DNA of 64,000 bases from the sequence record NC_048045.1; one strand, given 5' to 3'. The notes below the pieces were generated by a model. The model had not been told where the DNA came from and searched no databases. It saw only the letters and a list, made by a program, of their open reading frames with translations. A program made the position numbers and the translations under genes. Below are positions 11,313 to 63,192 of the stretch, in pieces. How positions within the stretch are numbered: the stretch's first letter is position 1; every line of letters starts with the position of its first letter.

Positions 11313-11350
11313 GAAAAGGGCCTCCGGCGTTGTCGTCGGAGGCCCTTCTA
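11310..11350 (-). repeat. 41-nt exact repeat, copy 1 (copy 2 at 63152-63192, plus strand)
   Basis: TAGAAGGGCCTCCGACGACAACGCCGGAGGCCCTTTTCATG is identical in both places. Confidence 0.9.
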
Positions 11351-11387
11351 GCGAGTCGGTGTCAGGCTGTCAACACATGTCAGCCAG
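11316..11387 (-). promoter_or_regulatory. Phage promoter family member
   Basis: TGGCT-N6-TGTTGACA-N17-TAGAAG-N7-GACGACAAC-GGAGG. Confidence 0.8.
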
Positions 11388-11994
11388 CCGCAGCCACCAA
11401 CTTCTCGATGCGGTTGAAGCCCAGTTCGAGCCGGCCCCAGAAGGCGCTCGGCACGTGCGGCTTGACGACCTCGGTGAAGCGCGCGCGCTCCTTGAGGTAC
11501 ATCTTGGCCATGCCCAGGTGAGGCGCCTGGGTCGCCGGGTCCTTGATCGACGCCTCGACGTTGGCGATCCGGTCGGCCAGCTTCAGGATGCAGGCCTCGG
11601 GGTTCTCGCCGAGCTTGCGATAGATGTCCTCGTTGCGGGACTTGCGGTTGGGACCGATGCCCGAGACCGCCCAGACCAGCGCCGCGACGCGGTCGCCGAA
11701 CTTGTCCTCGATCATCTGACGGCGGGCCTCGGGCGTCATGTCGAGGTGGGTGTCCTCGATCACGTCGTGCAGCTTGGCCGCCGCCGTCCAGGTGAAGCCG
11801 GCATAGCCGAAATCGTCCAGGATGCGCTCGACCTTCTGGAGGTGGTAGAGGTAGGGCTGGCCGGCGTACTGCTGATCGCCGTGCGCGGCGATGGCGAACT
11901 TCGTCGGGTCCTCCTGGTGGAAGCCGCCGGGCGCGCCGACGTCCGCCATCAGGTTGGCCAGTTGGTCGGGATCGGACAGGGGCGTGTCGGTCAT
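11380..11994 (-). CDS. HD-domain hydrolase, RelA/SpoT/Mesh1-like (small alarmone hydrolase candidate)
   Basis: AHGDQ..PYLYH, AAKLHDVIEDT, FGDRVAALV, LKLADRIAN. Confidence 0.85.
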   Translation of the reverse strand: MTDTPLSDPDQLANLMADVGAPGGFHQEDPTKFAIAAHGDQQYAGQPYLYHLQKVERILDDFGYAGFTWTAAAKLHDVIEDTHLDMTPEARRQMIEDKFGDRVAALVWAVSGIGPNRKSRNEDIYRKLGENPEACILKLADRIANVEASIKDPATQAPHLGMAKMYLKERARFTEVVKPHVPSAFWGRLELGFNRIEKLVAAAG

Positions 11995-12398
11995 GACGTT
12001 TTCTCGGGGATCAGGGTGAAGACTTCCACGCCCTCGTCGATGCGCATGTGGTGCGTCGGCGGGTGGGCGGGGTTGTAGCGGATGTAGCCGGCGAGGCCGC
12101 CGTCGATCATCGCGCCGCCGCGCTCCTGGTAGTCGTGGCGGAAGCGCGAGACCAGGAACGAGCCATCGGCGAGCTTGATGGCCGAGAACACCGCCTCGCG
12201 GATCGAGGCCGCCGAGGTAATGTAGACGCCCTCTTTGAGGGGATGGACGAACAACCCGAAGTAGTTGTCGTGGCCCTGCGACCGATCCGGCGTCTCGGTG
12301 TAGAAGACGTAGAACGGACCCTCCCGATCGGGGAGGTCATAGTAGCCCACGTACTTGGCGTTGTAGCGCTCTTCGGCGACTTTGACGTTGATGCCCAT
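11991..12398 (-). CDS. Hypothetical protein
   Basis: ORF with overlaps on both sides; SRFRHDY and MIDGG motifs. Confidence 0.75.
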   Translation of the reverse strand: MGINVKVAEERYNAKYVGYYDLPDREGPFYVFYTETPDRSQGHDNYFGLFVHPLKEGVYITSAASIREAVFSAIKLADGSFLVSRFRHDYQERGGAMIDGGLAGYIRYNPAHPPTHHMRIDEGVEVFTLIPEKTS

Positions 12399-12898
12399 CA
12401 GGCGACCCTCAGGAATTCACCCCACGCGGGGGCGGCGTATTTCAGATAGGCCTCGTGCGCGGCCTCCGGCGTACTATAGCGTCCCAGGAAGCGATAGACA
12501 CCATGAATGGTGATCTGGGCCTGGAACGGCTTGCTCTTGCATCGGCACTTGGTCACGCCCTTGGGCAGGGCGCCGATCGGGCGGCGGTTGACGAGGTTCT
12601 GCGACCGCGTGGCCTTCCGGAGGTTCTTGATCCGGTTGTTGCGGCGGTTGCAGTCCTCGTGGTCGACGTCATGGTCGGGGACGACCCCGTGGTGGAGCGC
12701 CCAGGCCAGCTTGTGGGCGGCGATCTGGATGCGGCGGCCCTCGTAGGGGACCTTGATCACCCGGTAGCCGTCCTGGTTGACCGTGCCCAGGCGCTTGCGG
12801 GTCTTGGAACCCCGCAGATAGATGGCGCCGGACGAGGCCTCATAGCGGTAGCGCGCCTTGAGGTACTCGACCGGGATGACGTACTCTGCCCCCGACAT
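12398..12898 (-). CDS. HNH endonuclease with AP2-like domain (free-standing homing endonuclease)
   Basis: AHKLAW, VDHEDCNRRNNRIKNLRKATRSQN, GV..FQAQITIHG...FLGRYSTPEAAHEAY; start moved to MSGAEY. Confidence 0.88.
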   Translation of the reverse strand: MSGAEYVIPVEYLKARYRYEASSGAIYLRGSKTRKRLGTVNQDGYRVIKVPYEGRRIQIAAHKLAWALHHGVVPDHDVDHEDCNRRNNRIKNLRKATRSQNLVNRRPIGALPKGVTKCRCKSKPFQAQITIHGVYRFLGRYSTPEAAHEAYLKYAAPAWGEFLRVA

Positions 12899-14485: not shown

Positions 14486-15718
14486 CTAGCCCTTCACGCA
14501 GAGGACTTGCTTCAGGGTGTGGACGATGTCCACGAGGTCCTTCTGCGCCTCCATGACCGCGTCGATGTCCTTGTAGGCCATCGGGATTTCGTCGATCACG
14601 CCGATGTCCTTGCGGCACTCGACGCCTTCGGTCGCCTTGATCTGGTCTTCCAGCGTGAAGGCCGCCTTGGCGGCGGTGCGCGACATGGTCCGGCCCGCGC
14701 CGTGCGAGCACGAGCAGAACGAGTCGGCGTTGCCCTTGCCGCGCACGATGTAGGACTTGGCCCCCATCGAGCCGGGGATGATGCCGAACTGGTCCTTCTG
14801 AGCCGACACCGCGCCCTTGCGGGTCACGAAGACCCACTCGTCGAAGTGGAACTCCTTCTGGACGTAGTTGTGGTGGCAGTTCACCGCTTCCTTGTCCGTC
14901 TTGAAGGGCGGCAGGCCCGAGGCGCGCATGGCGTCCAGGACCCGGATCATCATCATCTCGCGGTTGATCCGCGCGAAGTCCTGGCCCCAGGCGACGGCTT
15001 CCACGTAGTCGTAGAATTCCGGCTCGCCTTCCGACAGCCACGCGAGGTCCTTGTCGAGCGGCTTCTGGCCGTCCCGACGCAGCATCATCTCCTTGGCCTT
15101 CTCGATGAAGATACGACCGATGGTGTTGCCGACGCCGCGCGAGCCCGAGTGGAGCATCACCCAGACGCGCTGGTCCTCGTCGAGGCAGACCTCGATGAAG
15201 TGGTTGCCGCCGCCCAGCGTGCCCAGTTGGACGACGCTGTTGGCGTTCTTGAGGGCCTTGTACTTGTCGCAGAGCTTCTCGAACCGAGCCTCCAGGCCCG
15301 AGTCGACCCACTTGCGCATGATCGAGTTCGGGATGCCGCTGCGCCCGTTCCAGCCGCCCGACGGACCCGGCCCGCCGTGCGGGACGGCGTGCTCGATCAG
15401 CGAGCGCAGCTTGGCGAGGCTGTCGGGCAGGTCCGAGGCCGTCAGCGAGGTGCGCACGGCCATCATGCCGCAGCCGATGTCCACGCCCACGGCCGCCGGG
15501 ATGATGGCGCCCTTGGTCGGGATCACCGAGCCCACGGTCGAGCCGATGCCCATGTGGACGTCCGGCATCAGGGCCACGTGCGAATGGATGAACGGCAGGG
15601 CGGCGAGGTTGTGCGCCTGCACCTGGGCGGGTTGTTCGAAGGTCACGCCCCGGACCCAGGCCTTGATCACCCCGCCGTTCCAGCCGGTGATCTCTTCGTA
15701 TTGGGTCTCGGCGGTCAT
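14486..15718 (-). CDS. rtcB: RNA ligase RtcB (tRNA-splicing/repair ligase)
   Basis: MPDVHMG, VGVDIGCG, LGTLGGGNHF, HSGSRG, HHNY, RKGA, IPGSMG, SHGAGR, DEIPMAYKDI. Confidence 0.97.
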   Translation of the reverse strand: MTAETQYEEITGWNGGVIKAWVRGVTFEQPAQVQAHNLAALPFIHSHVALMPDVHMGIGSTVGSVIPTKGAIIPAAVGVDIGCGMMAVRTSLTASDLPDSLAKLRSLIEHAVPHGGPGPSGGWNGRSGIPNSIMRKWVDSGLEARFEKLCDKYKALKNANSVVQLGTLGGGNHFIEVCLDEDQRVWVMLHSGSRGVGNTIGRIFIEKAKEMMLRRDGQKPLDKDLAWLSEGEPEFYDYVEAVAWGQDFARINREMMMIRVLDAMRASGLPPFKTDKEAVNCHHNYVQKEFHFDEWVFVTRKGAVSAQKDQFGIIPGSMGAKSYIVRGKGNADSFCSCSHGAGRTMSRTAAKAAFTLEDQIKATEGVECRKDIGVIDEIPMAYKDIDAVMEAQKDLVDIVHTLKQVLCVKG

Positions 15719-15722
15719 GTGC

Positions 15723-15784
15723 TCCTCGCTGCCGTTGTCGTGATTTACGACTTTTGACCACGCCCTTCGTCGTCTGTCAACACA
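15723..15784 (-). promoter_or_regulatory. Phage promoter family member (variant) upstream of rtcB
   Basis: TGTTGACA-N17-TCAAAA, then ACGACAAC and AGGAG. Confidence 0.6.
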
Positions 15785-16065
15785 CCTTCGACCGCTTCGA
15801 TCTGGATTTGCAGCGTCGTCCTGGCGATGCTCAGCGGCGGGAGTTGCTCACCGACAAGCTTCATGTCCCCCAGGGCGTAGAGCAGGGTGTCGTAGAACTC
15901 GGCCTCCGAGCCCCCGACGTTGAGCCGCTCCTGGATATGGGTGATCCGGGCCTGGAGGACGCGGGCGCGATCATCGTTGGGCAGGAGCGAGGCCTCGACC
16001 TGGGCGATCGCCTCGACGGTGTCTCGCAGCATGCTGCGGTAGGTGTTCTGACGCGGGGTACTCAT
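15745..16065 (-). CDS. Hypothetical protein (106 aa)
   Basis: Start MSTPRQ overlaps upstream TGA. Confidence 0.65.
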   Translation of the reverse strand: MSTPRQNTYRSMLRDTVEAIAQVEASLLPNDDRARVLQARITHIQERLNVGGSEAEFYDTLLYALGDMKLVGEQLPPLSIARTTLQIQIEAVEGVLTDDEGRGQKS

Positions 16066-18122: not shown

Positions 18123-18406
18123 CAGGAAGCGAGCCCGCGCTGCTTCAAGGCGACGATCTGCTCGATCTCCTTGAGGATGTGCTCAGACAGGCGGTCGGTG
18201 CGCTCCTTGATGCCGGCGGGGACGCCGATCTTGCATTGGCCGATCTCGTGCAGGCGATCGGAGACCGCCTTCAGATCGATCAGGGTGTCGCGGATCAGCA
18301 CGTCGGCGAGGCTCAGGGCCTCGGACTGGAGCGCGGCGATGCGCTGGGCGGTGGTGATCTCGTCGCCCGTCGTCACAACGGCGAGCTTGGTCTGGGCAGC
18401 GGTCAA
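18122..18406 (-). CDS. Hypothetical coiled-coil protein
   Basis: TTG start after AGGAG RBS of a promoter leader. Confidence 0.7.
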   Translation of the reverse strand: MTAAQTKLAVVTTGDEITTAQRIAALQSEALSLADVLIRDTLIDLKAVSDRLHEIGQCKIGVPAGIKERTDRLSEHILKEIEQIVALKQRGLAS

Positions 18407-18413
18407 ATCGGGT

Positions 18414-18468
18414 CTCCTTGTTGTCGTCGGGCGTGACTTCTAGCCGGCGTCCGTGGGGCTGTCAACAC
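18414..18468 (-). promoter_or_regulatory. Phage promoter family member
   Basis: TGTTGACA-N17-TAGAAG-N8-GACGACAAC-AGGAG. Confidence 0.8.
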
Positions 18469-18997
18469 TTTCGCTCACGGGCACGGCACCATAGTGCGCG
18501 ACCAGCACGAGCCGCGCGCCGCAGGCCACGAGCGAGCCCTGGGCGTTGTAGATGAGCCGCCCGGCTTCCTGGCCGTTGGCGTCGAGGATCGCGGCGGCAT
18601 GCGCGTAGGTCGGCTTGCCGCCCTTGCCCTTCTGGATGCGGATCGGCGGAGCGTTGGTCTGGTGCTTGGTGTTGCGGTCGATGACCTGCCGGTTGACGTT
18701 GAGCACGATCATGCCGCGCTCGATCTTCGGCAGCGGCGCGGGCTCCTCGGGTGGAAGCGGCATCCAGCCAATGACGTCGTCAATGGTGTAGGCGTCGCGC
18801 CCAGCCATTTTCCAGCAGATGTAAGGATCGTCGTCCTCGTCGATCTGCCAGTCGACCAGTTGTGCCGTGTACATGCGTCCGTGCTGGGTCTTCACCAGCA
18901 CCCAGTCGGAGGCCTTGGCTCCCCAGGGGTCCTCTTGCTTGATCTCGGGCGGATCAGCATGCGGGTGACGCCACAGGGGCCAGGACGGATTGTTCAT
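18440..18997 (-). CDS. Two-domain hypothetical protein (DUF551-like N-terminus)
   Basis: DVIGWMPLP ends domain 1; VLNVNRQVIDRN..PPIRIQKG..LVACGARL forms domain 2; start MNNPSW. Confidence 0.7.
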   Translation of the reverse strand: MNNPSWPLWRHPHADPPEIKQEDPWGAKASDWVLVKTQHGRMYTAQLVDWQIDEDDDPYICWKMAGRDAYTIDDVIGWMPLPPEEPAPLPKIERGMIVLNVNRQVIDRNTKHQTNAPPIRIQKGKGGKPTYAHAAAILDANGQEAGRLIYNAQGSLVACGARLVLVAHYGAVPVSESVDSPTDAG

Positions 18998-19005: not shown

Positions 19006-19905
19006 CTACCAGCCAAACTTGGTGGCGCAGACCGGGCCGATGCCGGCATCGATCGAAGCGTGATTGGTCAGTTCCCGGCCGCAACAGGCGCAGGAGCCGG
19101 TGCGCTGACCGTAAGCGATGGCGGCGGCGTGGGGATCGGCCGCCAGGGCGAGGATTTCGGCTTCCTGCTCGGTGGTGCAGTCGCGCACCTTGAGGAACTT
19201 GCCGTTCATTACCTTGCCCATGTACACGCCCTCCACGGTGCGCACGTAGATGGCGCCGGCGTTGGTGCTGTCCATGGCGGCGGGCTTGAACTTGTAGCCG
19301 GCCAGTCGCAGGGTGATGTTCTTCAGGCCCGAACCCTTGGCGTGGAAGAAGGCTTCTTCCAGCTTGGCGAGCGAGATCACCGGCGCGGCGGCTTCGCGGG
19401 CGACCCGCTCGGCTTCGCGCTGGATCGCGCGCTTCTTGTCCTCGGCCGCGAGCCGTTCGACGGTCGCCAGTTGCTTCTCGGTCAGGTGACCGAACCGTTC
19501 CACGGCCTGAAGCATCTGATTGGCGAAGTCGAAACGCGGCGCGCGCTCGACCATCCAGGCCGTCGCCTCGGGGTGCGCCAGCTTCCAGGCGGCGCGTTGC
19601 TGCTGGAGATCGAACTGGACCTGGGCCTTTTTCTTGTCGGCGTTGGCGCGGCGGCGGGCGCGTTCCTCGGGCGAGGTCTTGCGCACGAACTTGCCCTTGC
19701 CCTTACAGACGAAGCACTGGCGGCCGTACTGCGACATGCCGCGATAGGTGCCCGTGCCCCGGCATTTGGGGCAAAGCTCGATCCACTCGGCCGGCGGCGG
19801 GGTCTCGTCGACGAAATCGACGCCCGCCTCCATGGGCTCACCCGGTTGGGTTTCCCGGACCACCGGCTCGGTGATCAGTTCATCCATGTCAGCGAAAAGG
19901 TCCAC
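19006..19905 (-). CDS. Zinc-binding protein with DnaJ-type CxxCxGxG pair and C-terminal DUF6011-like motif
   Basis: CPKCRGTG..CFVCKGKG; CACCGRELTNHASIDAGIGPVCA. Confidence 0.8.
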   Translation of the reverse strand: MDLFADMDELITEPVVRETQPGEPMEAGVDFVDETPPPAEWIELCPKCRGTGTYRGMSQYGRQCFVCKGKGKFVRKTSPEERARRRANADKKKAQVQFDLQQQRAAWKLAHPEATAWMVERAPRFDFANQMLQAVERFGHLTEKQLATVERLAAEDKKRAIQREAERVAREAAAPVISLAKLEEAFFHAKGSGLKNITLRLAGYKFKPAAMDSTNAGAIYVRTVEGVYMGKVMNGKFLKVRDCTTEQEAEILALAADPHAAAIAYGQRTGSCACCGRELTNHASIDAGIGPVCATKFGW

Positions 19906-19909
19906 GGCG

Positions 19910-19980
19910 GGTCTCCATCAGCAGGTGATGGAGCCCTTCTAGGCCTCTCGACCTAGCGTGTCAACACTCTCGCGCCAACA
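19910..19980 (-). promoter_or_regulatory. Phage promoter family member lacking GACGACAAC, with RBS hairpin
   Basis: TGGCG-N6-TGTTGACA-N17-TAGAAG; CTCCATC/GATGGAG stem. Confidence 0.75.
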
Positions 19981-22862: not shown

Positions 22863-23227
22863 CAGGCCGACACCTTGCCCAGTTGCTTTTCCAGTTCGGC
22901 GCGCAGTTCGGCGTCGGTCAGGCCCAGGCGTTCCTTCATGAACGTCAGGGCGTCGGCCGCGTTATCGAAGGAGCGGGTCTCCCGATCGGTACTGTCGCGC
23001 AGGCCCCGGATTTCGGTCACGCCCCAGAAGGTCGCCCAGAGGGCCACGACCAGGGCCGCCAGCGCCGCGAAGAACGAGCCACCGAACTGGTGCGCATCGA
23101 CGCGCTCGACGAGATCGGCTGCGGCCCAGGTCGCGGCGAGCACCGCCACGGTGCCCAGATGCAGCAGGGCGGTCTTGCGGGTGTAGGTCGGGGTCACCGC
23201 CAGGGTGAACTTGTCGCTGGTCTCCAA
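22862..23227 (-). CDS. Membrane protein (2 TM)
   Basis: TTG start after promoter leader; hydrophobic segments. Confidence 0.7.
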   Translation of the reverse strand: METSDKFTLAVTPTYTRKTALLHLGTVAVLAATWAAADLVERVDAHQFGGSFFAALAALVVALWATFWGVTEIRGLRDSTDRETRSFDNAADALTFMKERLGLTDAELRAELEKQLGKVSA

Positions 23228-23235
23228 GAGAGGTC

Positions 23236-23303
23236 TCCTCTGTCGTTGTCGTCGAGGTGCTTATAGGCGGTGGTCAACCGGCTGTCAACACTCTCACGCC
23301 AGC
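23236..23303 (-). promoter_or_regulatory. Phage promoter family member
   Basis: TGGCG-N6-TGTTGACA-N17-TATAAG-N6-GACGACAAC-GAGGAG. Confidence 0.85.
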
Positions 23304-24712: not shown

Positions 24713-25041
24713 TTCTTGCCTCTCGGACGGTTGGCCTCAAACCACGCATGCCACTCGGCCTTGGTCATCCAAGGCTGGGTGCGGCGGGCGTTGTAGAGGG
24801 CGAGGCCCTCCTCGGTCACGGTGTAGAATTTCGAGCCGCGCTCCATGTGCGGCATGCGCTGCTCGGACTTGGCGAGCCCGCGCTTTTCGAGCTTGGCCAG
24901 GGTCGCCGAATGGTGCGAGCCATTCGAGCCGCCGACATCCATGGTGCGGTGCCGGCGGATCGGTTCATCTCGGAAGGATGGGATCAGGCACCCCAGGACC
25001 TCCCAGTCGCGGTCGGTCAGCGGGGACAGGCGTCGGGTCAT
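24709..25041 (-). CDS. Winged-helix (MarR-like) DNA-binding protein
   Basis: LTDRDWEVLGCL..SATLAKLEKRGLAK..YTVTEEG; start MTRRLS with GGAG RBS. Confidence 0.65.
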   Translation of the reverse strand: MTRRLSPLTDRDWEVLGCLIPSFRDEPIRRHRTMDVGGSNGSHHSATLAKLEKRGLAKSEQRMPHMERGSKFYTVTEEGLALYNARRTQPWMTKAEWHAWFEANRPRGKK

Positions 25042-25047
25042 CGCGGT

Positions 25048-25113
25048 CTCCAGGTTGTCGTCAATCCGACATCTAGGAGGCTTTTCCGAACCTGTCAACA
25101 CAATCACGCCAGC
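25048..25113 (-). promoter_or_regulatory. Phage promoter family member
   Basis: TGGCG-N6-TGTTGACA-N17-TAGATG-N7-GACGACAAC-GGAG. Confidence 0.85.
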
Positions 25114-26420: not shown

Positions 26421-26725
26421 TGACGGATCACCTCGATGGTTTGGATCGAGAATTCGACGTGGCCGTGATCGCAGTCACCCGCACCCAGCAAGATGGCCTC
26501 CAGCGCCTCACGGGTCCCTCGCTCCCAGGCGTCGCGCGCGGCGCGGGCTTCCGAGGGGGTGGCGGTGGGGTTTCGATCGGGCATCTTGAAGCGGCGGGAG
26601 ATCACGCTGTTCAGCTTGGCGGAGGTCTCCTCGGCGTGGGCCGAGTCGGCGAACGCGGCGAGGTTGGTGATGCTCCCGGCATCGTAGTCGCGGTCATCCA
26701 TGACCAGGATGTAGACGGTGTCCAC
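26417..26725 (-). CDS. Hypothetical protein
   Basis: GTG start with GGAGG RBS after a promoter. Confidence 0.7.
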   Translation of the reverse strand: MDTVYILVMDDRDYDAGSITNLAAFADSAHAEETSAKLNSVISRRFKMPDRNPTATPSEARAARDAWERGTREALEAILLGAGDCDHGHVEFSIQTIEVIRQ

Positions 26726-26731
26726 GGTGGG

Positions 26732-26783
26732 CCTCCTTCGTTGTCGTCGGAGCCTACCTAGACTGGCGCGAGTGTGTTGTCAA
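26732..26783 (-). promoter_or_regulatory. Phage promoter family member with inverted TGGCG site in the spacer
   Basis: TTGACA-ACACACTCGCGCCAGTC-TAGGTA-N6-GACGACAAC-GGAGG. Confidence 0.85.
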
Positions 26784-26923
26784 GCGGGCGTGCAGCGCAT
26801 GAGGAGCACGGCCACGAGGAGCAACACGGCGCTCACGCCAAACAGGCGAAAGCTCGGCACGGCGATCGAGAACAACAGCCCTAGGAGGCCCAGAAGCAGT
26901 AGGATGAGAATCAGGACGGCCAT
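26780..26923 (-). CDS. Small membrane protein (47 aa)
   Basis: MAVLILILLLLGLLGLLFSIAVPSFRLFGVSAVLLLVAVLLMRCTPA; fills a gap in the gene string. Confidence 0.55.
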   Translation of the reverse strand: MAVLILILLLLGLLGLLFSIAVPSFRLFGVSAVLLLVAVLLMRCTPA

Positions 26924-28058: not shown

Positions 28059-28327
28059 CTCTGCTTTTCCAGCGCGGCCCAGGTGACGTCGATCGTCACG
28101 CCCAGCGTGGTGTGCTCATCGGGGAAGCCCTCGGGCAGGTCGATCCCAAACTCCTCCTCCAGCGACATCGCCAGATCGACGAGGTCAAGGCTGTCGAAGC
28201 GCAGGTCTTCCATGAGACGAAGCCCCTTGTGGTAGTCATCCAACGCAATATGCGACTCGCTCATCATGTGCGCGAACTCGTAGACCGCGATCTGGACTTC
28301 AGACCATGTGGTGCTCGTATCGACCAA
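28055..28327 (-). CDS. acpP: Acyl carrier protein
   Basis: LMEDLRFDSLDLVDLAMSLEEEFGIDLPE with the phosphopantetheine DSL serine; acidic, 90 aa. Confidence 0.88.
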   Translation of the reverse strand: MVDTSTTWSEVQIAVYEFAHMMSESHIALDDYHKGLRLMEDLRFDSLDLVDLAMSLEEEFGIDLPEGFPDEHTTLGVTIDVTWAALEKQR

Positions 28328-28331
28328 GGAC

Positions 28332-28399
28332 TTCCCCTTCTGCTGCTGCCGGGCGGTTCTAGCTAAGCTTCACTATGGTGTCAACGTACTAACGCCAGA
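28332..28399 (-). promoter_or_regulatory. Phage promoter (no GACGACAAC) upstream of ACP
   Basis: TGGCG-N6-CGTTGACA-N17-TAGAAC. Confidence 0.7.
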
Positions 28400-30658: not shown

Positions 30659-31227
30659 GCCTTGATCTCCTCGAAGCGGCCGTCCATGAACTCGGCCTCG
30701 CGCCGGCCCCAGACCTGTCCGCTGCCGTCGATATAGGTCAGCAGGATTTCGTCATCCTGGATCGGGGTCTCGCATTGGATGCGGACGATCCCCACCAGGG
30801 CATAGTCGGTCCCGCGCTTCTTGTGCCGGAACCGCCGCATGCCGCGCGGAAGTTCGGCCAGGAACGCTTTCATGGCGTCGGCTATCTTGGTGAAGCCGTG
30901 CGGGAAGTGCGAGCCGGGGTTGCGCATCCAGGCATAGACCGTGGCCAGGGCGAACCGCCCGGCCGCGATCTCGCCGGTGGGGTCCTTGCGCAGGACGTCC
31001 GGGGCGTGCTCTTCCAGATAGTTGGTGCCGACGAGCGCCAGCATCCGGGCCTCGTCGACGCTCGTCGGCAGGTTGATGTGTCCCACCGGGGTCGACGTTT
31101 CCAGGCGCTTGATCATGTCGTCGATCAGCTTGGCGCTGTCCTGGTGAAAGCGCTTGAGGTCGCCGCCATAAATGGAGGCGCTGCTGAGATGCCAGTCCCG
31201 GAGAAGGATGAGAGGGTCTTGAGTCAT
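30655..31227 (-). CDS. Hypothetical protein with C-terminal DUF1653-like domain
   Basis: RFRHKKRGTDYALVG..LLTY..VWGRREAEFMDGRFEEI; start MTQDPL. Confidence 0.7.
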   Translation of the reverse strand: MTQDPLILLRDWHLSSASIYGGDLKRFHQDSAKLIDDMIKRLETSTPVGHINLPTSVDEARMLALVGTNYLEEHAPDVLRKDPTGEIAAGRFALATVYAWMRNPGSHFPHGFTKIADAMKAFLAELPRGMRRFRHKKRGTDYALVGIVRIQCETPIQDDEILLTYIDGSGQVWGRREAEFMDGRFEEIKA

Positions 31228-31229
31228 TG

Positions 31230-31296
31230 GAGCCTTTCGTGTCGTCACCCGCGACACTAGCTGGTCGCGGGTGAAGCTGTCAACACATCACGCCAG
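31230..31296 (-). promoter_or_regulatory. Phage promoter family member with 10-bp inverted repeat around the -10
   Basis: TGGCG-N5-TGTTGACA-N18-TAGTGT; CACCCGCGAC/GTCGCGGGTG; GACGACAC. Confidence 0.7.
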
Positions 31297-31812
31297 GGCG
31301 TCGAGGCCGCGATGATAGAAGAGGCGGCGGCCGTTGAAGAACAGCCGAACGCGGAACTTCTCGCCCAGCACGCCCATATCGAGAGAGAACCCCAGCAGGC
31401 CCAGGCTCACATAGGCATGCTTTCCGCGCATGCCGCCGGCCATGGGGAGGTCGTTCATCCCGCCGATCACGATCCGCGCCAGCCAGAGCCAGCCCAGGTC
31501 GAAGCGCTTGAAGCCCTGCCAGGAGATCGAGCGCCAGGAGAAGCCGCCATCCAGGATGCGCAGGTCCGCGTCGAGGTTCCAGCCGCCGGCCAGGGGGTCG
31601 CCCCGGCGATGGTAGCGCAGGCGGCAGAGCACGGTCTGGTAATCGAACTGCGGCAGGCGTCCGAGAAGGGCGAACCAGAGCCGCGCGACGACGTAGAAGA
31701 AGGGATGGATCAGGACCGCGTACAGCAACACGGCCAGGAAGACCCAGGCGTGGTAGTAATTGATCCAGAAGAGGCCCAGGAAAAGCCCGAGCTTGGGTTG
31801 GTCGTTGGTCAA
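31288..31812 (-). CDS. Hypothetical membrane-associated protein
   Basis: Hydrophobic, aromatic N-terminus. Confidence 0.7.
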   Translation of the reverse strand: MTNDQPKLGLFLGLFWINYYHAWVFLAVLLYAVLIHPFFYVVARLWFALLGRLPQFDYQTVLCRLRYHRRGDPLAGGWNLDADLRILDGGFSWRSISWQGFKRFDLGWLWLARIVIGGMNDLPMAGGMRGKHAYVSLGLLGFSLDMGVLGEKFRVRLFFNGRRLFYHRGLDALA

Positions 31813-32441: not shown

Positions 32442-32734
32442 CAGGCGTCCTTCGTCGAGCGCTTGAAGCGGCCGTTCTCGTCGTAGTGGTCGATGCTGGC
32501 GCCGGGCGCGTGGAAGCCGGCGATCGAGCCGAACTCCATGGCGGCGCGCTGCTGCTTGGTCACGCCCATGCGCTCGTTCAGAGAGTCGACGACGTCCTGG
32601 CCCTGGACGCCATAGCCCGTCGGGTAGTAGCCGGTCTCGTCCTTCTTCAGGACGACCGTCGTACCGTCCGCCGGGCTGACCGCATAGCAGAGGTCGGGAA
32701 GGGCGGCGAGATTGATCTGGCGAAGCGTCATCAT
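32441..32734 (-). CDS. Hypothetical protein
   Basis: GGAGG RBS after a promoter; LNERMGVTKQQRAAMEFGS. Confidence 0.75.
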   Translation of the reverse strand: MMTLRQINLAALPDLCYAVSPADGTTVVLKKDETGYYPTGYGVQGQDVVDSLNERMGVTKQQRAAMEFGSIAGFHAPGASIDHYDENGRFKRSTKDA

Positions 32735-32738
32735 GGGG

Positions 32739-32806
32739 GCCTCCTTGGTTGTCGTCGACGATCCCTATAGACCTGCCTTGTCAGGCTGTCAACACTCGAC
32801 AGCCAA
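32739..32806 (-). promoter_or_regulatory. Phage promoter family member
   Basis: TGGCT-N6-TGTTGACA-N17-TATAGG-N7-GACGACAAC-GGAGG. Confidence 0.85.
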
Positions 32807-37558: not shown

Positions 37559-37564
37559 GCGGGT

Positions 37565-40027: not shown

Positions 40028-40275
40028 GTTGTGGAGTCCTTCTTGCGGGCGGTGTAGTGGAACTCGTCGTGCATGCGCCCGTCCAAGGTGATCTCGTAGC
40101 CGGGACCCAGTTCAGCCAGGATGCGCGCCTCGATCTCGGCGAAGTCGATGTTGGCCATCGCACGCTCGGCCGCCGCCGCCTGCTCCAGAAAGCTGCTCCT
40201 GATCTTGGCGCCGGCCTCGGTACGGATCGGGATGTTCTGGATGGGTGGCTCGGACTTGGACAGGCGCTCGGTCAT
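40024..40275 (-). CDS. Small protein (83 aa) carrying DNA polymerase A motif A- and C-like peptides
   Basis: ANIDFAEIEARILAELG and GRMHDEFHY; start MTERLS coupled to the gcrA stop. Confidence 0.7.
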   Translation of the reverse strand: MTERLSKSEPPIQNIPIRTEAGAKIRSSFLEQAAAAERAMANIDFAEIEARILAELGPGYEITLDGRMHDEFHYTARKKDSTT

Positions 40276-40820
40276 CAAGCCCTCTTTTTCTTGCCGACGT
40301 GCGAGGGGCGCGTGGCGGCCTTGTAGACGAATGGGCGATAGGCCATGCGGTGGTGGTCGATGCAGTAGACGCCCTGCGCGGTGCGGCACCCGCAATGGCC
40401 GAAGTTCTGGTCGGTCGGGTCGCCGTAGGGCCAGCGGCACATCCCGCGCCCCAGGCTCAGGGTGGGGACGACAGTCTCGGGACGCACCGGGATCGGCGCC
40501 TGCCCCTCGGGGACCAGTTCGATCTTGGGCTTCGAAGGCGTTTCGGCCTTGGGCTTGGCGGCTTTCTTGGGCTTGGCGACCTTGACCTTCTTGATCTGGA
40601 TGCCGTAGCCGCGCGTTTTCTTGCGGCGCTCCTGGAGCGGCAAGACCTTGTCGCCCAGTTCGCCCTTCTGGCGCAGGCGATCGCCCATGCCGCAGACGGC
40701 GCTCTTGCTGCGCGGCTCGCGTAGCATTTCCCCGATCTGCTTGGTCCCGACAGGCTCGGCCCAGAGCTTCTTGAGCAGGGCGATGTCCTCGGCCAGCCAG
40801 TCCGACTTACGCTTCTTCAC
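40275..40820 (-). CDS. gcrA: GcrA-like cell-cycle regulator
   Basis: W..EDIALLKKLWAE...QIGEML..SKSAVCG..RL; CRWPYGDP..FGHCG...YCIDHHRMAY. Confidence 0.92.
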   Translation of the reverse strand: MKKRKSDWLAEDIALLKKLWAEPVGTKQIGEMLREPRSKSAVCGMGDRLRQKGELGDKVLPLQERRKKTRGYGIQIKKVKVAKPKKAAKPKAETPSKPKIELVPEGQAPIPVRPETVVPTLSLGRGMCRWPYGDPTDQNFGHCGCRTAQGVYCIDHHRMAYRPFVYKAATRPSHVGKKKRA

Positions 40821-41065: not shown

Positions 41066-41079
41066 GCGCAAAATAGCTC

Positions 41080-41145
41080 TGGCTGGCGAGTGTTGACAAG
41101 GAGGCGGTGGTCCCTTAGAAGGGCGGCGACGACAACGAAAGGAGG
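41080..41145 (+). promoter_or_regulatory. Phage promoter family member (first rightward)
   Basis: TGGCT-N6-TGTTGACA-N17-TAGAAG-N6-GACGACAAC-GGAGG. Confidence 0.85.
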
Positions 41146-41150
41146 CGCCG

Positions 41151-41450
41151 ATGCGCTACGTTCTGGAGTACATGGACTGCGACGACCAGATCGTCCAGGT
41201 CGACTTCGAGGCCGCCACCCGCGCCTCGGCGATCGCCAAGGCCAAGCGCCTCTTCGTGAAGGCGGTCGAGGCCAGCGGTCGGTCGATCTTCACCGGCTAT
41301 ATGTTCGAGGACCACTCGATCACCATGAAGGTGAAGCTGGTCCCGTTCGGCACCCTGAGCCGCTACCTGGGTCTGGGCAAGGTCACCGTCGCCAACATCG
41401 CGTTCGACGACCGCGACGCCAAGATCGCCCGCCAGGACATGGCCGCATGA
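41151..41450 (+). CDS. Hypothetical protein
   Basis: GGAGG RBS. Confidence 0.75.
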   Translation: MRYVLEYMDCDDQIVQVDFEAATRASAIAKAKRLFVKAVEASGRSIFTGYMFEDHSITMKVKLVPFGTLSRYLGLGKVTVANIAFDDRDAKIARQDMAA

Positions 41451-42855: not shown

Positions 42856-43047
42856 GTGCTGACCAACGAGGAGATCACCTTCGCGGGCCTGATCCGGGCC
42901 ATGGAGGACGCCCGCCGCGAAGCCCGCGCGGTGGGCGATCTCCTCAAGTCCGCCGAGATCGACGGCTGGTTCAAGGAGCACGCGCCGATCATCCGGGCGA
43001 TCCGCGACAAGGCCGAAGCCGACGAATTCGACAATCCGTTGGCGTGA
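42856..43047 (+). CDS. Hypothetical protein
   Basis: ORF in string. Confidence 0.65.
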   Translation: MLTNEEITFAGLIRAMEDARREARAVGDLLKSAEIDGWFKEHAPIIRAIRDKAEADEFDNPLA

Positions 43048-43105
43048 GAGTGTTGACAGCCTCGCCGCGCCCGGTTAAAAGCCTCCTCGACGACAACGCA
43101 AGGAG
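43038..43105 (+). promoter_or_regulatory. Phage promoter family member
   Basis: TGGCG-N6-TGTTGACA-N17-TAAAAG-N7-GACGACAAC-AGGAG. Confidence 0.85.
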
Positions 43106-43111
43106 CCTGTC

Positions 43112-44275
43112 TTGACCGATTTCCCGATCATCCGCGCCGCCATCGAAGGCCGCCGCGCCGCCGCGTTCGACACGATGCTGGCCAATGCCGACGCCTTCGC
43201 CGCCGAGGGCGTGCTGATCAAGGCCGAGTTCGAGGACATCAAGGGCGTCTTCACCCGCTGCATCGACGCGGCCTGGGAGGTCGTGCGCAAACGCTACTTC
43301 TTCATCGACCACGCCCTGCGCACCAAGGAAGTCGAGGACCTCTTCTGGAGCTTCTCGATCCCCTACCCGCACGTCCTGCCGGGCTACCTGAAGAAGACCC
43401 TGGCGGCCAAGAACATCCCGTCCAACGTCCGCGAGGACCTCGTGGCCCTGTTCAACGAGGGCATCGCCCTCAACGACAAGCTGGTGGCGCTCAAGCCCCT
43501 GATCGGCAAGCGCGCGCCCAAGAAGACCAAGGTCGAGATCGAGCGCGAGGGCAAGGAGCGCACCTGCCAAATCTGCGGTCGCGGCATCCTGGCCGAGGGC
43601 GGCACCATCGCCCACCACGGCTATACCCGTCCCGGCTACGGCTGGCAGACCGCCTCCTGCTCAGGCGCCCGCGAGGTCCCGTTCGAGATCAGCCGCGACG
43701 AACTGCGCAAGGAGATCGAGGCCCTCAAGGCGTGGCGCGTGCGCAAACTCGCCGAGCGCGCCCGGATCGAGGCCGAGGAAGTCAAGCTGGTGCTGAAGTA
43801 TCAGGTCTCCGAGCAGGACCCGCGCCGCGCGCAGGGCTTCAAGCTGACCGTCGATCGCCAGATCGAAGTCACCCGCGACACCTTCGAGGCCCTGAAGGTC
43901 TCCACGCCCGAGGCCTTCTCGGGCAAGTACAACCCCCGCAAGGAGGGCAAGTACACCTACGAGGCCCTGACCTTCGATGGTCTCAAGACCCAAGCCATCG
44001 GCATGGTCGACATCGAGATCGGCCGCCTGGACACTGACATCCTCCGCCAGCAGGCCCGCTATGACGGCTGGACCCAGAAGGCGATCTTTGGCGCCGGCCG
44101 CTATTGGTTCATCGGCGAGACGGTCCGCGTCCCCGGCGGCGACACCGGCAAGATCAAGGGCTTCTACCAGCACGTCCCGCCGCAGCCCGGCGACATCGCC
44201 GGCGGCCTCTACCTGGAGCAGGAAGCCGGCGGCCACAAGTCCTGGAACGTGGCCGAACTGGAAGCGGTGGGCTGA
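43112..44275 (+). CDS. Hypothetical protein with Zn-binding-like motif
   Basis: TCQICGR..IAHHGYTRPGYGWQTASCSG. Confidence 0.8.
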   Translation: MTDFPIIRAAIEGRRAAAFDTMLANADAFAAEGVLIKAEFEDIKGVFTRCIDAAWEVVRKRYFFIDHALRTKEVEDLFWSFSIPYPHVLPGYLKKTLAAKNIPSNVREDLVALFNEGIALNDKLVALKPLIGKRAPKKTKVEIEREGKERTCQICGRGILAEGGTIAHHGYTRPGYGWQTASCSGAREVPFEISRDELRKEIEALKAWRVRKLAERARIEAEEVKLVLKYQVSEQDPRRAQGFKLTVDRQIEVTRDTFEALKVSTPEAFSGKYNPRKEGKYTYEALTFDGLKTQAIGMVDIEIGRLDTDILRQQARYDGWTQKAIFGAGRYWFIGETVRVPGGDTGKIKGFYQHVPPQPGDIAGGLYLEQEAGGHKSWNVAELEAVG

Positions 44276-46135: not shown

Positions 46136-46212
46136 GCTGGCGTTAGAGTGTTGACAGTCGTCGGGGCCTCCTCTATAGACACGCTCGACGACAACGAGGA
46201 GGCCCCGATGAC
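46136..46212 (+). promoter_or_regulatory. Phage promoter whose 17-nt spacer is antisense to the downstream RBS and start codon
   Basis: TGGCG-N6-TGTTGACA-GTCGTCGGGGCCTCCTC-TATAGA-N7-GACGACAAC-GAGGAGGCCCCGATGAC. Confidence 0.9.
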
Positions 46213-49741: not shown

Positions 49742-49965
49742 TCGATCACGTCTACCGCCGCGATCCGCGCGGCAAGGACTACGGCGTCCAGCGGATGGAC
49801 CTGGGCGAGGCCCTGGCGGTGGTCGCCGCCGAGAAGCAGGACTTTCTCCTGCGGCTCGTCGAGGTCCTGCACGAGAACAATCTCCTGCGCGACGCAGACG
49901 TCCTGGAATTGCTCGGCAAGGGCTGGGGCCTGGAGGCCTACGACGTCCTGTACGAAGACGATTGA
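49738..49965 (+). CDS. Hypothetical protein
   Basis: GTG start MIDHVY. Confidence 0.65.
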   Translation: MIDHVYRRDPRGKDYGVQRMDLGEALAVVAAEKQDFLLRLVEVLHENNLLRDADVLELLGKGWGLEAYDVLYEDD

Positions 49966-50014
49966 CAACACTCTCGCGCCAGCATAGAGGTGTCTCCGAC
50001 GACAACGAAGGAGG
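49962..50014 (+). promoter_or_regulatory. Phage promoter with inverted TGGCG site in the spacer
   Basis: TTGACA-ACACTCTCGCGCCAGCA-TAGAGG-N7-GACGACAAC-GGAGG. Confidence 0.85.
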
Positions 50015-50019
50015 CTTCC

Positions 50020-50391
50020 GTGAAGCTCGCGACCCAAGACCGGACCGATCCCCGCCTGAACGCCGACTACCGCCTGATCAAGGCGGTCTTCTACTACGGC
50101 GGCCCGGCCGAGTACCCGATCCACCTGGACGAACGCTGGAGCGCGGTGACGCCGGCCCAGGTCGAGGACCAGATTTCGGCCCTCTGCCGCGATCTCGCCA
50201 AGTGCTCGGGCAACACCCTGGCGCCGGCGACCTTCTACGAGCGCGCCAAGCTGAGCTTCGCCGAGGTCCCGCCGGTGTCCGACGAGTTCTGGGGCCTGAT
50301 CTCCGAGACCACCAAGCAGAACATCCTCGCCATGAAGGATCGCTTCACGGTCCACGGCAGCGGCTTCCTCCTGTCCTGGGCCAAGGCCTGA
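50020..50391 (+). CDS. Hypothetical protein
   Basis: GTG start MKLATQ after GGAGG. Confidence 0.75.
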   Translation: MKLATQDRTDPRLNADYRLIKAVFYYGGPAEYPIHLDERWSAVTPAQVEDQISALCRDLAKCSGNTLAPATFYERAKLSFAEVPPVSDEFWGLISETTKQNILAMKDRFTVHGSGFLLSWAKA

Positions 50392-51433: not shown

Positions 51434-51509
51434 GCTGGCGTTCTTGTGTTGACAGCGACCCTCATGCGGGCCTAGAACGTCATCGACGACAACAAAGGAG
51501 CCCCGCATG
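51434..51509 (+). promoter_or_regulatory. Phage promoter family member; spacer pairs with the start codon region
   Basis: TGGCG-N6-TGTTGACA-N18-TAGAAC-N6-GACGACAAC; CATGCGGG/CCCGCATG. Confidence 0.85.
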
Positions 51510-51863: not shown

Positions 51864-52120
51864 GCGTCTTCACCGTCATCCTGTCGCAGTACGACGAGCA
51901 GCGCTTCTACATCGTCGAGGCCGGCAACAACATCAATGCCCTGGCGCACGCCAAGCGGGTCGCGGAGTCCCATGACGACAACGGCTCGATCTGGAAACTC
52001 GACATGATGTTCGTCGGCGCGCCCGACCTCGCGATGAAGGCCCAGGGCCTGAAGGTCATCGACCTGCGCGCGACCGTCCATGAGCCCGTTCCCCACGCCC
52101 AGCGGGGAGGCGGCTGCTGA
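51860..52120 (+). CDS. Hypothetical protein
   Basis: GTG start MSVFTV. Confidence 0.7.
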   Translation: MSVFTVILSQYDEQRFYIVEAGNNINALAHAKRVAESHDDNGSIWKLDMMFVGAPDLAMKAQGLKVIDLRATVHEPVPHAQRGGGC

Positions 52121-52662
52121 TGGTTGACCTGCTCGACAAGCGCACCATCACCGTCGACCCCTATGCGATCGTCACCGATCGCCTGGAGGGGTCGATCACC
52201 CTGGTGCGCCTCCATGAGGGCGGGCGTTACCGCCATGGTGGCAGTCTCATGTACTATAGCGGCCGGCAGATCAACACCGGGCTCAAAGGCGTCGCCTACA
52301 CCTACGACGACGAGACCAACGCCTCGTCGCTCGAATTCTGGGGCGGCTACGAGGACCGCGTCATGGCGCGCTTCGCGACCCGCGAGGACGCCATGAAGGC
52401 CCTGCACGATGGTCTGGCGGCGCGCGCCGAGGTCGACATCCTGGTCAAGCAGGCCCAGGCCATGCTCCAGGCCCTGGCCGATCTGCGCGACCGCCGGTTC
52501 AAGGAGACCGTCCAGGCCCAGGAGCGCGACGGCGTCCAGCGCGATGGCTGCGAGGTCTGCAACGGCGCGCGCGGCGGTGTGCCGGGCAACGAGAACGTCG
52601 TCGATGGCAAGGTGGTCTGCGACTACTGCCACGTCGACATCATGGATGCGAGGAAAGCCTGA
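52120..52662 (+). CDS. Hypothetical protein with C-terminal Zn finger
   Basis: CEVC..GGVPGNENVVDGKVVCDYCH. Confidence 0.75.
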   Translation: MVDLLDKRTITVDPYAIVTDRLEGSITLVRLHEGGRYRHGGSLMYYSGRQINTGLKGVAYTYDDETNASSLEFWGGYEDRVMARFATREDAMKALHDGLAARAEVDILVKQAQAMLQALADLRDRRFKETVQAQERDGVQRDGCEVCNGARGGVPGNENVVDGKVVCDYCHVDIMDARKA

Positions 52663-52883: not shown

Positions 52884-53229
52884 GAAAATTCCGCCCGCCC
52901 ATTCGTGGCTTTCGGCGCTCGCCTTCAGGACGGCGTTCAAGCGTCCGAGCCACGAGGAGCGCCTCAAGCGCCTCCAGGCTGTCCGCGCTGCCCGTCTTTC
53001 GGGTTCGGAGCTACGTGACCCGCTGATGAAGAAGCTGGTCCGCGACGGCCTCGTGCGCCTGCATCGTCCGTCAAACGCCGAATTCTACAGGCAGACCAAG
53101 GGTGGTTTCATGAAGCGGACCCAGGCTTTCCTCACGCCGGCCGGCGAAGCCTATCTGGCGGACCCGACCACCCATCATGTTCCGAAGTCGGAGCGCACCG
53201 AGAAGGTCAAGGGGATTCGGGGCAAATGA
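52873..53229 (+). CDS. Basic protein with winged-helix-like C-terminus
   Basis: LMKKLVRDGLVRL..FLTPAGEAYL. Confidence 0.6.
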   Translation: MGLRKIPPAHSWLSALAFRTAFKRPSHEERLKRLQAVRAARLSGSELRDPLMKKLVRDGLVRLHRPSNAEFYRQTKGGFMKRTQAFLTPAGEAYLADPTTHHVPKSERTEKVKGIRGK

Positions 53230-57705: not shown

Positions 57706-58331
57706 TGTCGTTCGTCGACCGGATGCGGGCCTACCTGCAAGCGGACCTGGAGATCGTCAAGCACTTCACCGAGCGGTTCTTCGCCAAGCGTCCTGACGAG
57801 CCCGACGCGGGCGTCTCGCCGCAGCCCATGAAGCCCGCCCCGCCTGGGGCGGGGATGGGAAGCGGAACAATACCGGGCGGCGGCGGTGGTGGCGGCAACA
57901 CCCACTTCTACTATCCCGGCGTGGGTGGAGGCGGCGGCTATGCGACAGCGTCGGGCGGCAACGGCGGCGGCAGCTATAGTGGCTCATCCGGGCAGGTCCT
58001 GGCCTGCAATGGCCATGCCATGCCCTGGATGGTCGTATCGCCCGCAAAGTTGAAGTCCACCAAGCCGGCCGGCAGCTTCAAGGACCTCAACGCGACCGAG
58101 GAGGCGGTGGTCCACAACGTGGCCCAATACGAGGGCACCGAACTGGTCCGCGAGCGGGACGGGACGTTCTCCTATTGCCGCAGCGGGCTGGCGTTGGCCA
58201 AGGATCGCGTCAAGGCGCGTACCGTCAATGCCTTGATTTCAAAGAAATTTCTGGACGTGGTCGAGTTCGGCGACCGCGCCGAGGCCCTGGTCTGCAAGCT
58301 CGGCTCGAACATCTTGGTCCACGGCCGCTAG
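57705..58331 (+). CDS. Hypothetical protein with Gly-rich linker
   Basis: PGGGGGGGN, PGVGGGGGY; globular C-terminus. Confidence 0.7.
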   Translation: MSFVDRMRAYLQADLEIVKHFTERFFAKRPDEPDAGVSPQPMKPAPPGAGMGSGTIPGGGGGGGNTHFYYPGVGGGGGYATASGGNGGGSYSGSSGQVLACNGHAMPWMVVSPAKLKSTKPAGSFKDLNATEEAVVHNVAQYEGTELVRERDGTFSYCRSGLALAKDRVKARTVNALISKKFLDVVEFGDRAEALVCKLGSNILVHGR

Positions 58332-58338
58332 AAAGTGT

Positions 58339-58398
58339 TTGACAACACTCTCACGCCAACATAGAACCCTCCTCGACGACAACGAGGAGGGCCATATG
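58339..58398 (+). promoter_or_regulatory. Phage promoter with inverted TGGCG site and 9-bp RBS hairpin
   Basis: TTGACA-ACACTCTCACGCCAACA-TAGAAC-CCTCCTC-GACGACAAC-GAGGAGGG. Confidence 0.9.
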
Positions 58399-59744: not shown

Positions 59745-59812
59745 CTTGGCGTTTGTGTGTTGACAGGGCAAGTCCGGTTCTGTAGACCTCTGCTCGACGA
59801 CAACGAGGAGGC
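59745..59812 (+). promoter_or_regulatory. Phage promoter family member
   Basis: TGGCG-N6-TGTTGACA-N17-TAGACC-N7-GACGACAAC-GAGGAGG. Confidence 0.85.
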
Positions 59813-59816
59813 CCCC

Positions 59817-60023
59817 ATGCCGCATCTGAGCAAGCAGTCCTACAGCTTCGGCTACACCAGCGACGCCCTGGCGGCGGCCGGCGAGTTCGAAGCCCTGACC
59901 ACTGAGTTCTATCGCTACGAGACCCGCTACCTCTACGACGCGTCTCGCGCGATCGTCGGCGTCGAGGTCCGCGTCATGGACGAGGACGGCTTCTTCGTCG
60001 GCTACGTCGCGGGCGAGGTCTAG
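59817..60023 (+). CDS. Hypothetical protein
   Basis: Start MPHLSK. Confidence 0.7.
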   Translation: MPHLSKQSYSFGYTSDALAAAGEFEALTTEFYRYETRYLYDASRAIVGVEVRVMDEDGFFVGYVAGEV

Positions 60024-62692: not shown

Positions 62693-62704
62693 GAAAGGAA
62701 GACC

Positions 62705-63121
62705 ATGGAAAACATCTTCGAAGTCGCCTCGCGCGAGAAGTACCGCTACGAATCCGCTAAGGGCCTCATCACCACCGAGGACCTGTGGGACCTGCCGCTG
62801 ACCAGCGACACGGGCAAGGCCAACCTGAACGACATCGCCGTCGGCCTGTTCAAGCAGGTCAAGGACCTGGACGACATCTCGTTCGTCAAGCCCAAGACGC
62901 TCGACAAGACCGTCGCCCCGCGCCTGGAGATCGTCAAGGCGGTGATCGCCTACCGCCAGGACGAGAACCGCAAGAAGCTGGAAGCCAGCACCAAGCGCGA
63001 GACCGCCCGCATCCTGCAAGAAGCCATCAGCGCCAAGCGCTCCGAGAAGATCGCCGGCACCCCGCTGGAAGAACTCGAAGCGCAACTGGCTGCGCTGAAG
63101 GCCGAGGGCGTCGAAGCCTAA
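62705..63121 (+). CDS. Hypothetical helical protein, probable partner of the upstream gene
   Basis: IFEVASREKYRYESAKGLITTEDLWDLPL; AGGAAAGG RBS. Confidence 0.8.
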   Translation: MENIFEVASREKYRYESAKGLITTEDLWDLPLTSDTGKANLNDIAVGLFKQVKDLDDISFVKPKTLDKTVAPRLEIVKAVIAYRQDENRKKLEASTKRETARILQEAISAKRSEKIAGTPLEELEAQLAALKAEGVEA

Positions 63122-63126
63122 TCGGC

Positions 63127-63192
63127 TGTTGACAACACTCTAACGCCAACATAGAAGGGCCTCCGACGACAACGCCGGAGGCCCTTTTCATG
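63127..63192 (+). promoter_or_regulatory. Phage promoter with inverted TGGCG site and 11-bp RBS hairpin
   Basis: TGTTGACA-ACACTCTAACGCCAACA-TAGAAG-GGCCTCC-GACGACAAC-GCCGGAGGCCCTTTT. Confidence 0.9.
63152..63192 (+). repeat. 41-nt exact repeat, copy 2
   Basis: Identical to the reverse complement of 11310-11350. Confidence 0.9.

Follow-up and report, generated by a model that had tools for sequence, protein, structure and literature searches.

We analysed a window of 64,000 nucleotides (nt) from the genome of the Caulobacter phage CcrBL10 (NC_048045, genome positions 124,001–188,000, 100% identity) and found a family of promoters that share the nine-nucleotide word GACGACAAC at the predicted start of transcription. 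The exact complement of this word forms an unpaired linker in a predicted small RNA encoded elsewhere in the same genome. Our favoured reading is that the word acts as a shared 5’ leader tag which is read by this phage antisense RNA, and we see about an even chance that it is correct. A wider form of the proposal, in which a lytic phage tags all of its early mRNAs, one trans-acting antisense RNA reads the tag, and tag and complementary seed co-evolve across the Dolichocephalovirinae, is put forward tentatively and with slightly less than even confidence.

The window contains 16 copies of GACGACAAC where 0.63 are expected, and shuffled sequences gave at most three. The promoter pattern TTGACA-N16–19-TA occurs 21 times against an expectation of 0.82, and the enrichment is about 25-fold for both the word and the pattern. 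A sequence-only reading of the window had listed 19 -35 hexamers. All of them were found where it had placed them, each co-oriented with the surrounding genes. Promoter strand follows the two gene arms, which diverge near 41 kb: promoters lie on the minus strand below about 40 kb and on the plus strand above 41 kb. The tally of the word given in the same reading was also exact: GACGACAAC lies 6–8 nt after the -10 at 14 of the 19 promoters, three carry a near match (CACGACAAC at 15734–15742, GACGACACG at 31238–31246 and GACGACGAC at 37574–37582) and two, with the -35 at 19964 and 28384, have no word. The remaining two of the 16 copies (2889–2897 on the minus strand, 51974–51982 on the plus strand) are intragenic and represent in-frame Asp-Asp-Asn codons, the reading frame being derived from the gene coordinates.

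The -35 element is an exact TTGACA at all 19 sites. A TAGAAG-like -10 is present at 17 of them, with a spacer of 17 nt (15 sites) or 18 nt (2 sites); at the site at 15780 the -10 reads TCAAAA and departs from the TA-initial pattern. A scanner for generic E. coli-type consensus promoters detected none of the family because the -10 lacks the final T. An ending in G or C fits the Caulobacter consensus, GCTANAWC.

The word is part of a cassette with a constant order of elements: a 13-nt block (TGGCGYGAGAGTG), TTGACA, 17 or 18 nt, the TAGAAG-like -10, a C/T-rich stretch, GACGACAAC, the ribosome-binding site and the start codon. Between the -10 and the word lie 6–7 (once 8) C/T-rich nt, usually with CTC at the end, and downstream of the word follow 0–5 nt, GGAGG, a further 5–8 nt and the start codon. 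Counting 7–8 nt past the -10, a usual start distance, the first purine met is the G or A in the word; the word should therefore represent positions +1 to +9 of the mRNA, with transcription starting at this G or A. The sequence-only reading had proposed a conserved 5’ end of early mRNAs; the promoter geometry and the location in the early arms agree with this, the start site itself being inferred from geometry.

In most cassettes the 13-nt block abuts the -35 on its 5’ side (type A). The spacers had been described as otherwise diverse, which holds for part of the family only: four promoters (-35 at 26783, 49962, 58339 and 63129) have the same spacer, ACACTCTCGCGCCA, in which the block reappears exactly as its reverse complement (type B; regions 26759–26777, 49968–49984, 58345–58361 and 63135–63151). 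The block touches the -35 from either side and in either orientation, and the word keeps a single orientation throughout. This arrangement suggests that the block is an orientation-independent double-stranded DNA site for some factor. The 13-nt block is also carried by Brevundimonas phages.

The whole genome holds 20 exact cassettes plus about 7 that are degenerate, and all of them lie within 114–202 kb in the early arms, a span of about 40% of the CcrBL10 genome. RNA sequencing (RNA-seq) of the related phage phiCbK has classified about 41% of the genes as early, including the replication genes and tgrL (PMC10688885), and the portion of the CcrBL10 genome spanned by cassettes matches this fraction. 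The gene tgrL is early and highly expressed in phiCbK (PMC10688885); by position only, we take gp199 of CcrBL10 to be its counterpart. Since the cassettes are confined to the arms that are early in the phiCbK data (PMC10688885) and since tgrL maps by position to an operon headed by a family member, the family very probably represents early promoters served by the host polymerase.

We then compared the cassettes with those of related phages. phiCbK, which belongs to a different genus and shows about 80% DNA identity, carries these cassettes too, with an identical word (15 in the 97 kb that were read; 14 by the strict pattern). Karma contains 17 word cassettes and Rogue 19. Orthologous sites of CcrBL10 and phiCbK differ in their discriminators, in their spacers and even in subtype, and the word is the same at most of them; at a few sites the word shows one-base variants or is lost. 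The identity profile of the orthologues was not counted as evidence, as it is circular: both promoter sets were chosen for having the word. In Colossus, which infects the same host, GACGACAAC occurs only at background level and TGACGATCA is found at at least 12 leaders. CcrBL9, again on the same host, has a different block and a different leader. Judged from these sequences, the identity of the word is set by the phage and not by the host polymerase, because phiCbK-type phages, Colossus and CcrBL9 share a host yet differ in word or leader. When bacterial genomes were scanned with the composite pattern, only scattered single matches and no genome with several were seen among the matches listed, in line with chance, for which about 400 in 596 Gb were estimated.

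This comparison bears on the simplest explanation, that the word is only an optimal start or initial-transcribed sequence for the Caulobacter polymerase and has no partner in trans. The GACGA core does stand at the same place in Caulobacter and Brevundimonas phages, and the C/T-rich discriminator ending in CTC would force the start to the first purine. Invariance of nine out of nine positions at 20 sites and across genera is nevertheless far beyond what is usual for initial-transcribed sequences, phages that share this host diverge in the 3’ half (CAAC versus TCA), and CcrBL9 manages on this host with an entirely different leader. We therefore consider such a pure initiation element improbable. 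An initial-transcribed element had been among the functions suggested by the sequence-only reading, and in this pure, host-polymerase form it is disfavoured by the different words that phiCbK-type phages and Colossus use on one host.

CcrBL10 contains a single intergenic copy of the word in antisense orientation, at genome position 52,176–52,184. It lies within a predicted, unannotated gene for a structured RNA of about 95 nt (genome 52,131–52,228, plus strand, 71.8 kb left of the start of the window), located in a protein-free gap between the tRNA array and the genes for PhoH and the head-tail adaptor. The counterpart in phiCbK is found at 52,957–53,054. A promoter of the family type is positioned 45 nt upstream of the antisense word (block, GTG-TTGACA, 17 nt, TACAAC, CCTCCTC, G); directly downstream lies a strong hairpin, which the records of phiCbK, Karma, Swift and Colossus list as a terminator. 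With its own promoter and an intrinsic terminator the predicted transcript is bounded as short and non-coding. The predicted fold consists of a 5’ stem-loop, the unpaired linker CGUUGUCGUCAG and the terminator hairpin (z = -4.8 to -5.9). The linker sequence is exactly complementary to the word together with the G usually found after it, and 5’ of the linker lie bases that are antisense to a ribosome-binding site.

In 8 phages of at least two genera the 12-nt linker is invariant, and it is unpaired in the consensus fold. Both stems vary by compensating substitutions as judged by eye, of which RNAalifold counts one double change only; the 8 phages are closely related. A 4-nt insertion or deletion among them leaves no conserved reading frame. 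A search against Rfam found no matching family for the small RNA, the best hit being a sub-threshold match to ar14 (20.8 bits versus 58.8 required).

We calculated duplex energies between the seed and the leaders. Energies of full-length duplexes were discarded, as they are inflated and ignore the folding within each RNA, and tests with the seed only or with a 28-nt segment were used instead. Seed-only duplexes with the 20 leaders show a mean of -18.5 kcal/mol compared with -10.9 kcal/mol for 277 control ribosome-binding sites (p = 1e-13). When CcrBL10 leaders are combined with the Colossus seed, the mean is -13.1 kcal/mol versus -18.5 with their own seed (p = 1e-4).

Pairing with ribosomal RNA was considered as another option, in which the word would be a translational enhancer comparable to the epsilon element of T7 gene 10. 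The position of a nine-nucleotide element just 5’ of the ribosome-binding site of phage mRNAs is suited to this function, and a universally conserved segment of the 16S rRNA presumably contains UGUCGUC, which could pair with GACGACA. A match of 7 nt in 1.5 kb is near chance, however, the rRNA segment is base-paired in the ribosome, and the word differs between phages of the same host, which leaves hardly any probability for this explanation. The T7 epsilon pairs with 16S rRNA and is not located at +1. It resembles the present word as a 9-nt element directly 5’ of the ribosome-binding site in a phage leader, and differs in that the complement of our word is found in a phage RNA and that the word stands at the predicted +1.

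For the antisense reading we propose the following course of events. Each cassette would act as a strong promoter for the host housekeeping RNA polymerase joined to a fixed leader, and about 20 early operons would thereby yield mRNAs with the same 5’ tag beside the ribosome-binding site. We infer that the small RNA of about 95 nt is expressed and that its linker pairs in vivo with the tag at the mRNA 5’ end. Every early mRNA would then carry a 5’-terminal duplex of 9–13 bp that reaches or covers the ribosome-binding site, and one RNA could tune translation or stability of the whole early class. Of the possible effects, repression as the RNA accumulates seems most likely.

If tag and RNA interact, they should change together. 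Positional orthologues of the RNA with the same three-part fold were identified in Colossus, CcrPW, Bajun, Marchewka and Gurke. All of them retain a UCGUC core that matches the GACGA core of the leaders. The seed of Colossus and CcrPW, UGAUCGUCA, is the exact complement of the Colossus word and shows two compensating double changes relative to the phiCbK group. In every lineage the reverse complement of the 28-nt segment ending at the seed reads as the word, a short spacer and the ribosome-site context typical of that lineage. When the base pairs extending the core were compared, the own seed was best for CcrBL10, Colossus and Gurke (only 4 leaders). In the matrix of whole segments CcrBL10, Colossus and Bajun each paired best with their cognate partner; the true assignment took rank 2 of 120 (approximately p = 0.017). 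In CcrBL9 and in a 279-kb metagenomic relative we found neither GACGA leaders nor the small RNA, and RcXuper, Erythrobacter L02 and Lacusarx show no synteny of the tRNA array and are thus uninformative.

Several results weigh against the antisense reading. The rank of 2 of 120 is suggestive and not decisive, and because the lineages are few and related, co-variation lends the proposal moderate support only. The reciprocal seed-only test in Colossus was marginal (p = 0.059), and in the core-extension test the leaders of Bajun and Marchewka fit the phiCbK-type seed better than their own. A blind prediction made from the Bajun and Marchewka seeds (GACGACGG) held only in part, and Gurke has only 4–5 GACGA leaders. 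A near copy of the leader (GGCGAUUAGG or GGCGAUAAGG), located in the 5’ domain of the Colossus-type RNA, is able to pair with the seed of the same RNA, and in CcrPW the lowest-energy fold hides the seed in this way; folding predictions thus allow that the Colossus-type RNA may switch itself off by its own leader copy. The promoter of the small RNA is furthermore of the same type as those of its proposed targets, and with RNA and targets sharing a promoter type a simple late shut-off is not obvious. Finally, part of the co-variation is also compatible with a DNA operator, since a DNA-binding protein would meet the same double-stranded word in the RNA gene.

The DNA operator is the main rival explanation. 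The word would be the binding site of a phage-encoded, sequence-specific protein on the DNA at +1 to +9, by which all early promoters are switched off (or on) together, and its inverted copy in the gene of the small RNA would count as a further operator. An overlap with the start site is the classic position for a repressor, several helix-turn-helix (HTH) proteins are encoded in the early arms, a word specific to the phage on the same host is what a phage-encoded protein predicts, and the Colossus word TGA-CGA-TCA is partly palindromic. The phiCbK-type word, on the other hand, is non-palindromic and has one orientation at all 20 promoters. The lone inverted copy coincides with the unpaired linker of a structured RNA that is conserved, and the complementarity extends into each lineage’s own ribosome-site context, which an operator does not need. 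Taken together we regard an operator as unlikely.

Strict orientation and a fixed spot at the RNA 5’ end beside the ribosome-binding site would equally be expected if the tag were read by a protein, that is by an RNA-binding protein or nuclease of phage or host that stabilises, translates or destroys the early mRNAs as a class; the phage-determined specificity is in keeping with this too. No candidate protein has been identified, and the conserved complementary RNA is left unexplained unless it serves as a decoy for the protein. We rate a protein-read tag as rather unlikely.

The sequence-only reading had also offered an antitermination signal, which found no support, as the word lies in no conserved hairpin of the locally started RNA. 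The hairpins at the cassettes differ from a lambda-type nut/boxB element: their 5’ arm lies upstream of the predicted start, so that the local RNA contains no hairpin, and the arm pairs do not covary. Likewise an 8-bp stem followed by TTTT, as in intrinsic terminators, is present in only 2 of 20 cassettes (-35 at 11373 and 63129), and a terminator scan over 41–60 kb remained at chance level.

The sequence upstream is often antisense to the ribosome-binding site at cassettes, and the word could accordingly be seen as the loop of hairpins in read-through RNA which hide the ribosome-binding site or terminate transcription, so that only the local RNA is translated. The predicted probability of the ribosome-binding site being unpaired is 0.25 in read-through RNA compared with 0.56 in local RNA, and shuffling the upstream sequence raises it to 0.41 (p = 0.005). 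Nine of the 19 cassettes have a value of at most 0.1 in the read-through RNA. Two cassettes are terminator-like, one of which is annotated as such in phiCbK. A loop does not need a fixed sequence, however, and about half of the cassettes show no occlusion, making it very improbable that this is the role of the word. Site-specific co-variation of the hairpin arms was rejected, as native arm pairs were no better than chimeras (p = 0.54), and the occlusion is for this reason a generic property of CCTCC-rich promoter DNA. According to these folding predictions about half of the cassettes have read-through occlusion as a second layer, real but generic, which leaves the invariance of the word unexplained.

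The proposed system shares features with several known ones. As in Caulobacter sigma-73/sigma-70 housekeeping promoters and in T5 and T7 class A early promoters, the cassettes have a near-consensus TTGACA, a spacing of 17 or 18 nt and a TA-initial -10, early genes downstream and a predicted use of the host polymerase. Unlike these promoters they have an invariant 9-nt word at +1, a 13-nt block in two orientations and a -10 that lacks the final T. Antisense RNAs that act on ribosome-binding sites are known from the phages P1/P7 (c4), P22 (sar) and lambda (OOP); these control one operon each, mostly in temperate phages and partly in cis. Common to them and to the RNA described here are the small size and a short unpaired stretch that complements phage mRNA at or beside a ribosome-binding site. 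Here, in contrast, one predicted trans-encoded RNA would serve about 20 operons of a lytic phage by means of a shared leader tag.

The endoribonuclease RegB and the translational repressor RegA of T4 also control early mRNAs as a class after transcription, by way of a short sequence in the ribosome-binding region, as is proposed here for the tag. Both are proteins, and their signal is the ribosome-binding site itself or a degenerate AU-rich site, unlike the separate fixed 5’ tag with an RNA partner that we propose. In the T4 genes for lysozyme (e), soc and I-TevI the ribosome-binding site is hidden in early read-through RNA and a late promoter lies inside the hairpin. The cassettes are similar in that the start is placed inside a hairpin whose 3’ arm holds the ribosome-binding site and only the local RNA is predicted to be open. 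They differ in that this arrangement is generic in about half of the promoter family, that a switch between temporal classes is without support and that the fixed loop is not explained by it. A literature search found no paper on early promoters, the leader word or small RNAs of phiCbK-type phages.

If the antisense reading is correct, a single RNA would control about 40% of the phage genes post-transcriptionally. A whole temporal class of genes would then be under one RNA-based master control, and a ready-made orthogonal pair of tag and anti-tag would be at hand for regulating genes in Caulobacter. In research on Caulobacter, phiCbK-type phages are standard tools, and the pairing can be tested in phiCbK, for which infection RNA-seq exists. 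Even without the RNA the list of cassettes is an operon map for the largely unannotated early arms.

On the minus strand the cassette at 11310–11387 is of type A, with the block, the -35, 17 nt, TAGAAG, GGCCTCC, the word at 11329–11337, a Shine-Dalgarno (SD) sequence and ATG; its arms form an 8-bp hairpin which is followed by TTTT. Further minus-strand cassettes of type A are located at 18404–18479 (word 18420–18428, 8 nt after the -10), 23225–23302 (word 23245–23253), 25039–25112 (word 25054–25062, driving the gene for an HTH DNA-binding protein) and 32732–32806 (word 32748–32756). The cassette at 26723–26797 is of type B with the block inverted in the spacer (word 26740–26748). At 15716–15794 the cassette is degenerate, with the -35 at 15775–15780, the weak -10 TCAAAA and the near match CACGACAAC. 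The cassette at 31225–31297 carries the near match GACGACACG, for which the phiCbK orthologue has the exact word, and the one at 37556–37631, carrying GACGACGAC, heads the operon that includes the ‘transcriptional regulator’ gp199. Of the two family promoters without the word, the one at 19903–19978 has a perfect 13-nt block and the one at 28325–28398 is of type A. A possible extra promoter outside the earlier list (9312–9376, minus strand; TTGACA, 18 nt, TAGTGT) has neither block nor word.

The first cassette on the plus strand, at 41079–41153 (word 41128–41136), marks the divergent point. It is followed by type A cassettes at 43039–43114 (word 43089–43097), 46137–46210 (word 46187–46195, with a spacer antisense to its own SD region), 51435–51509 (word 51485–51493, 18-nt spacer) and 59746–59819 (word 59796–59804). 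Type B cassettes are found at 49948–50022 (word 49998–50006), 58325–58398 (word 58375–58383) and 63115–63192 (word 63165–63173; 8-bp hairpin and TTTT). The phiCbK orthologue of the cassette at 58325–58398, at 178464, is of type A, and from this subtype swap it appears that one cassette subtype is exchanged for the other while the genomic position stays fixed, perhaps through cassette conversion. In the phiCbK record the orthologue of the hairpin in 63115–63192 (183509–183536) is annotated as a terminator, though a promoter start lies inside it. The 41 nt from the -10 to the ATG are identical in the cassettes at 11310–11350 and 63152–63192, on opposite strands and 52 kb apart. A type B cassette 2.5 kb right of the window (genome 190540–190640, plus strand) has an extra AT-rich hairpin of 30 nt between word and ribosome-binding site, an insertion that is kept in phiCbK (185967). 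The Brevundimonas phage Gurke (ON529850) contains about 50 near-identical cassettes at 278–312 kb on the minus strand, spaced every 0.5–1 kb or so. They consist of a AAAAAGAGG-type upstream block, TTGACA and a leader ending in CAACAAC directly before GGAGAC, and their word differs from GACGA.

The structural region of CcrBL10 has promoters of another type, with CGTGAATC abutting the -35 and no leader word. They are located at genome positions 29917, 46945, 55922, 71578, 79456 and 116943 on the plus strand, at 92906 on the minus strand and at 52270 just after the small RNA. CGTGAATC contains a GANTC methylation site, and a GcrA homologue is encoded in the window at 40275–40820 (minus strand). 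Such promoters may act late and require GcrA and DNA methylation.

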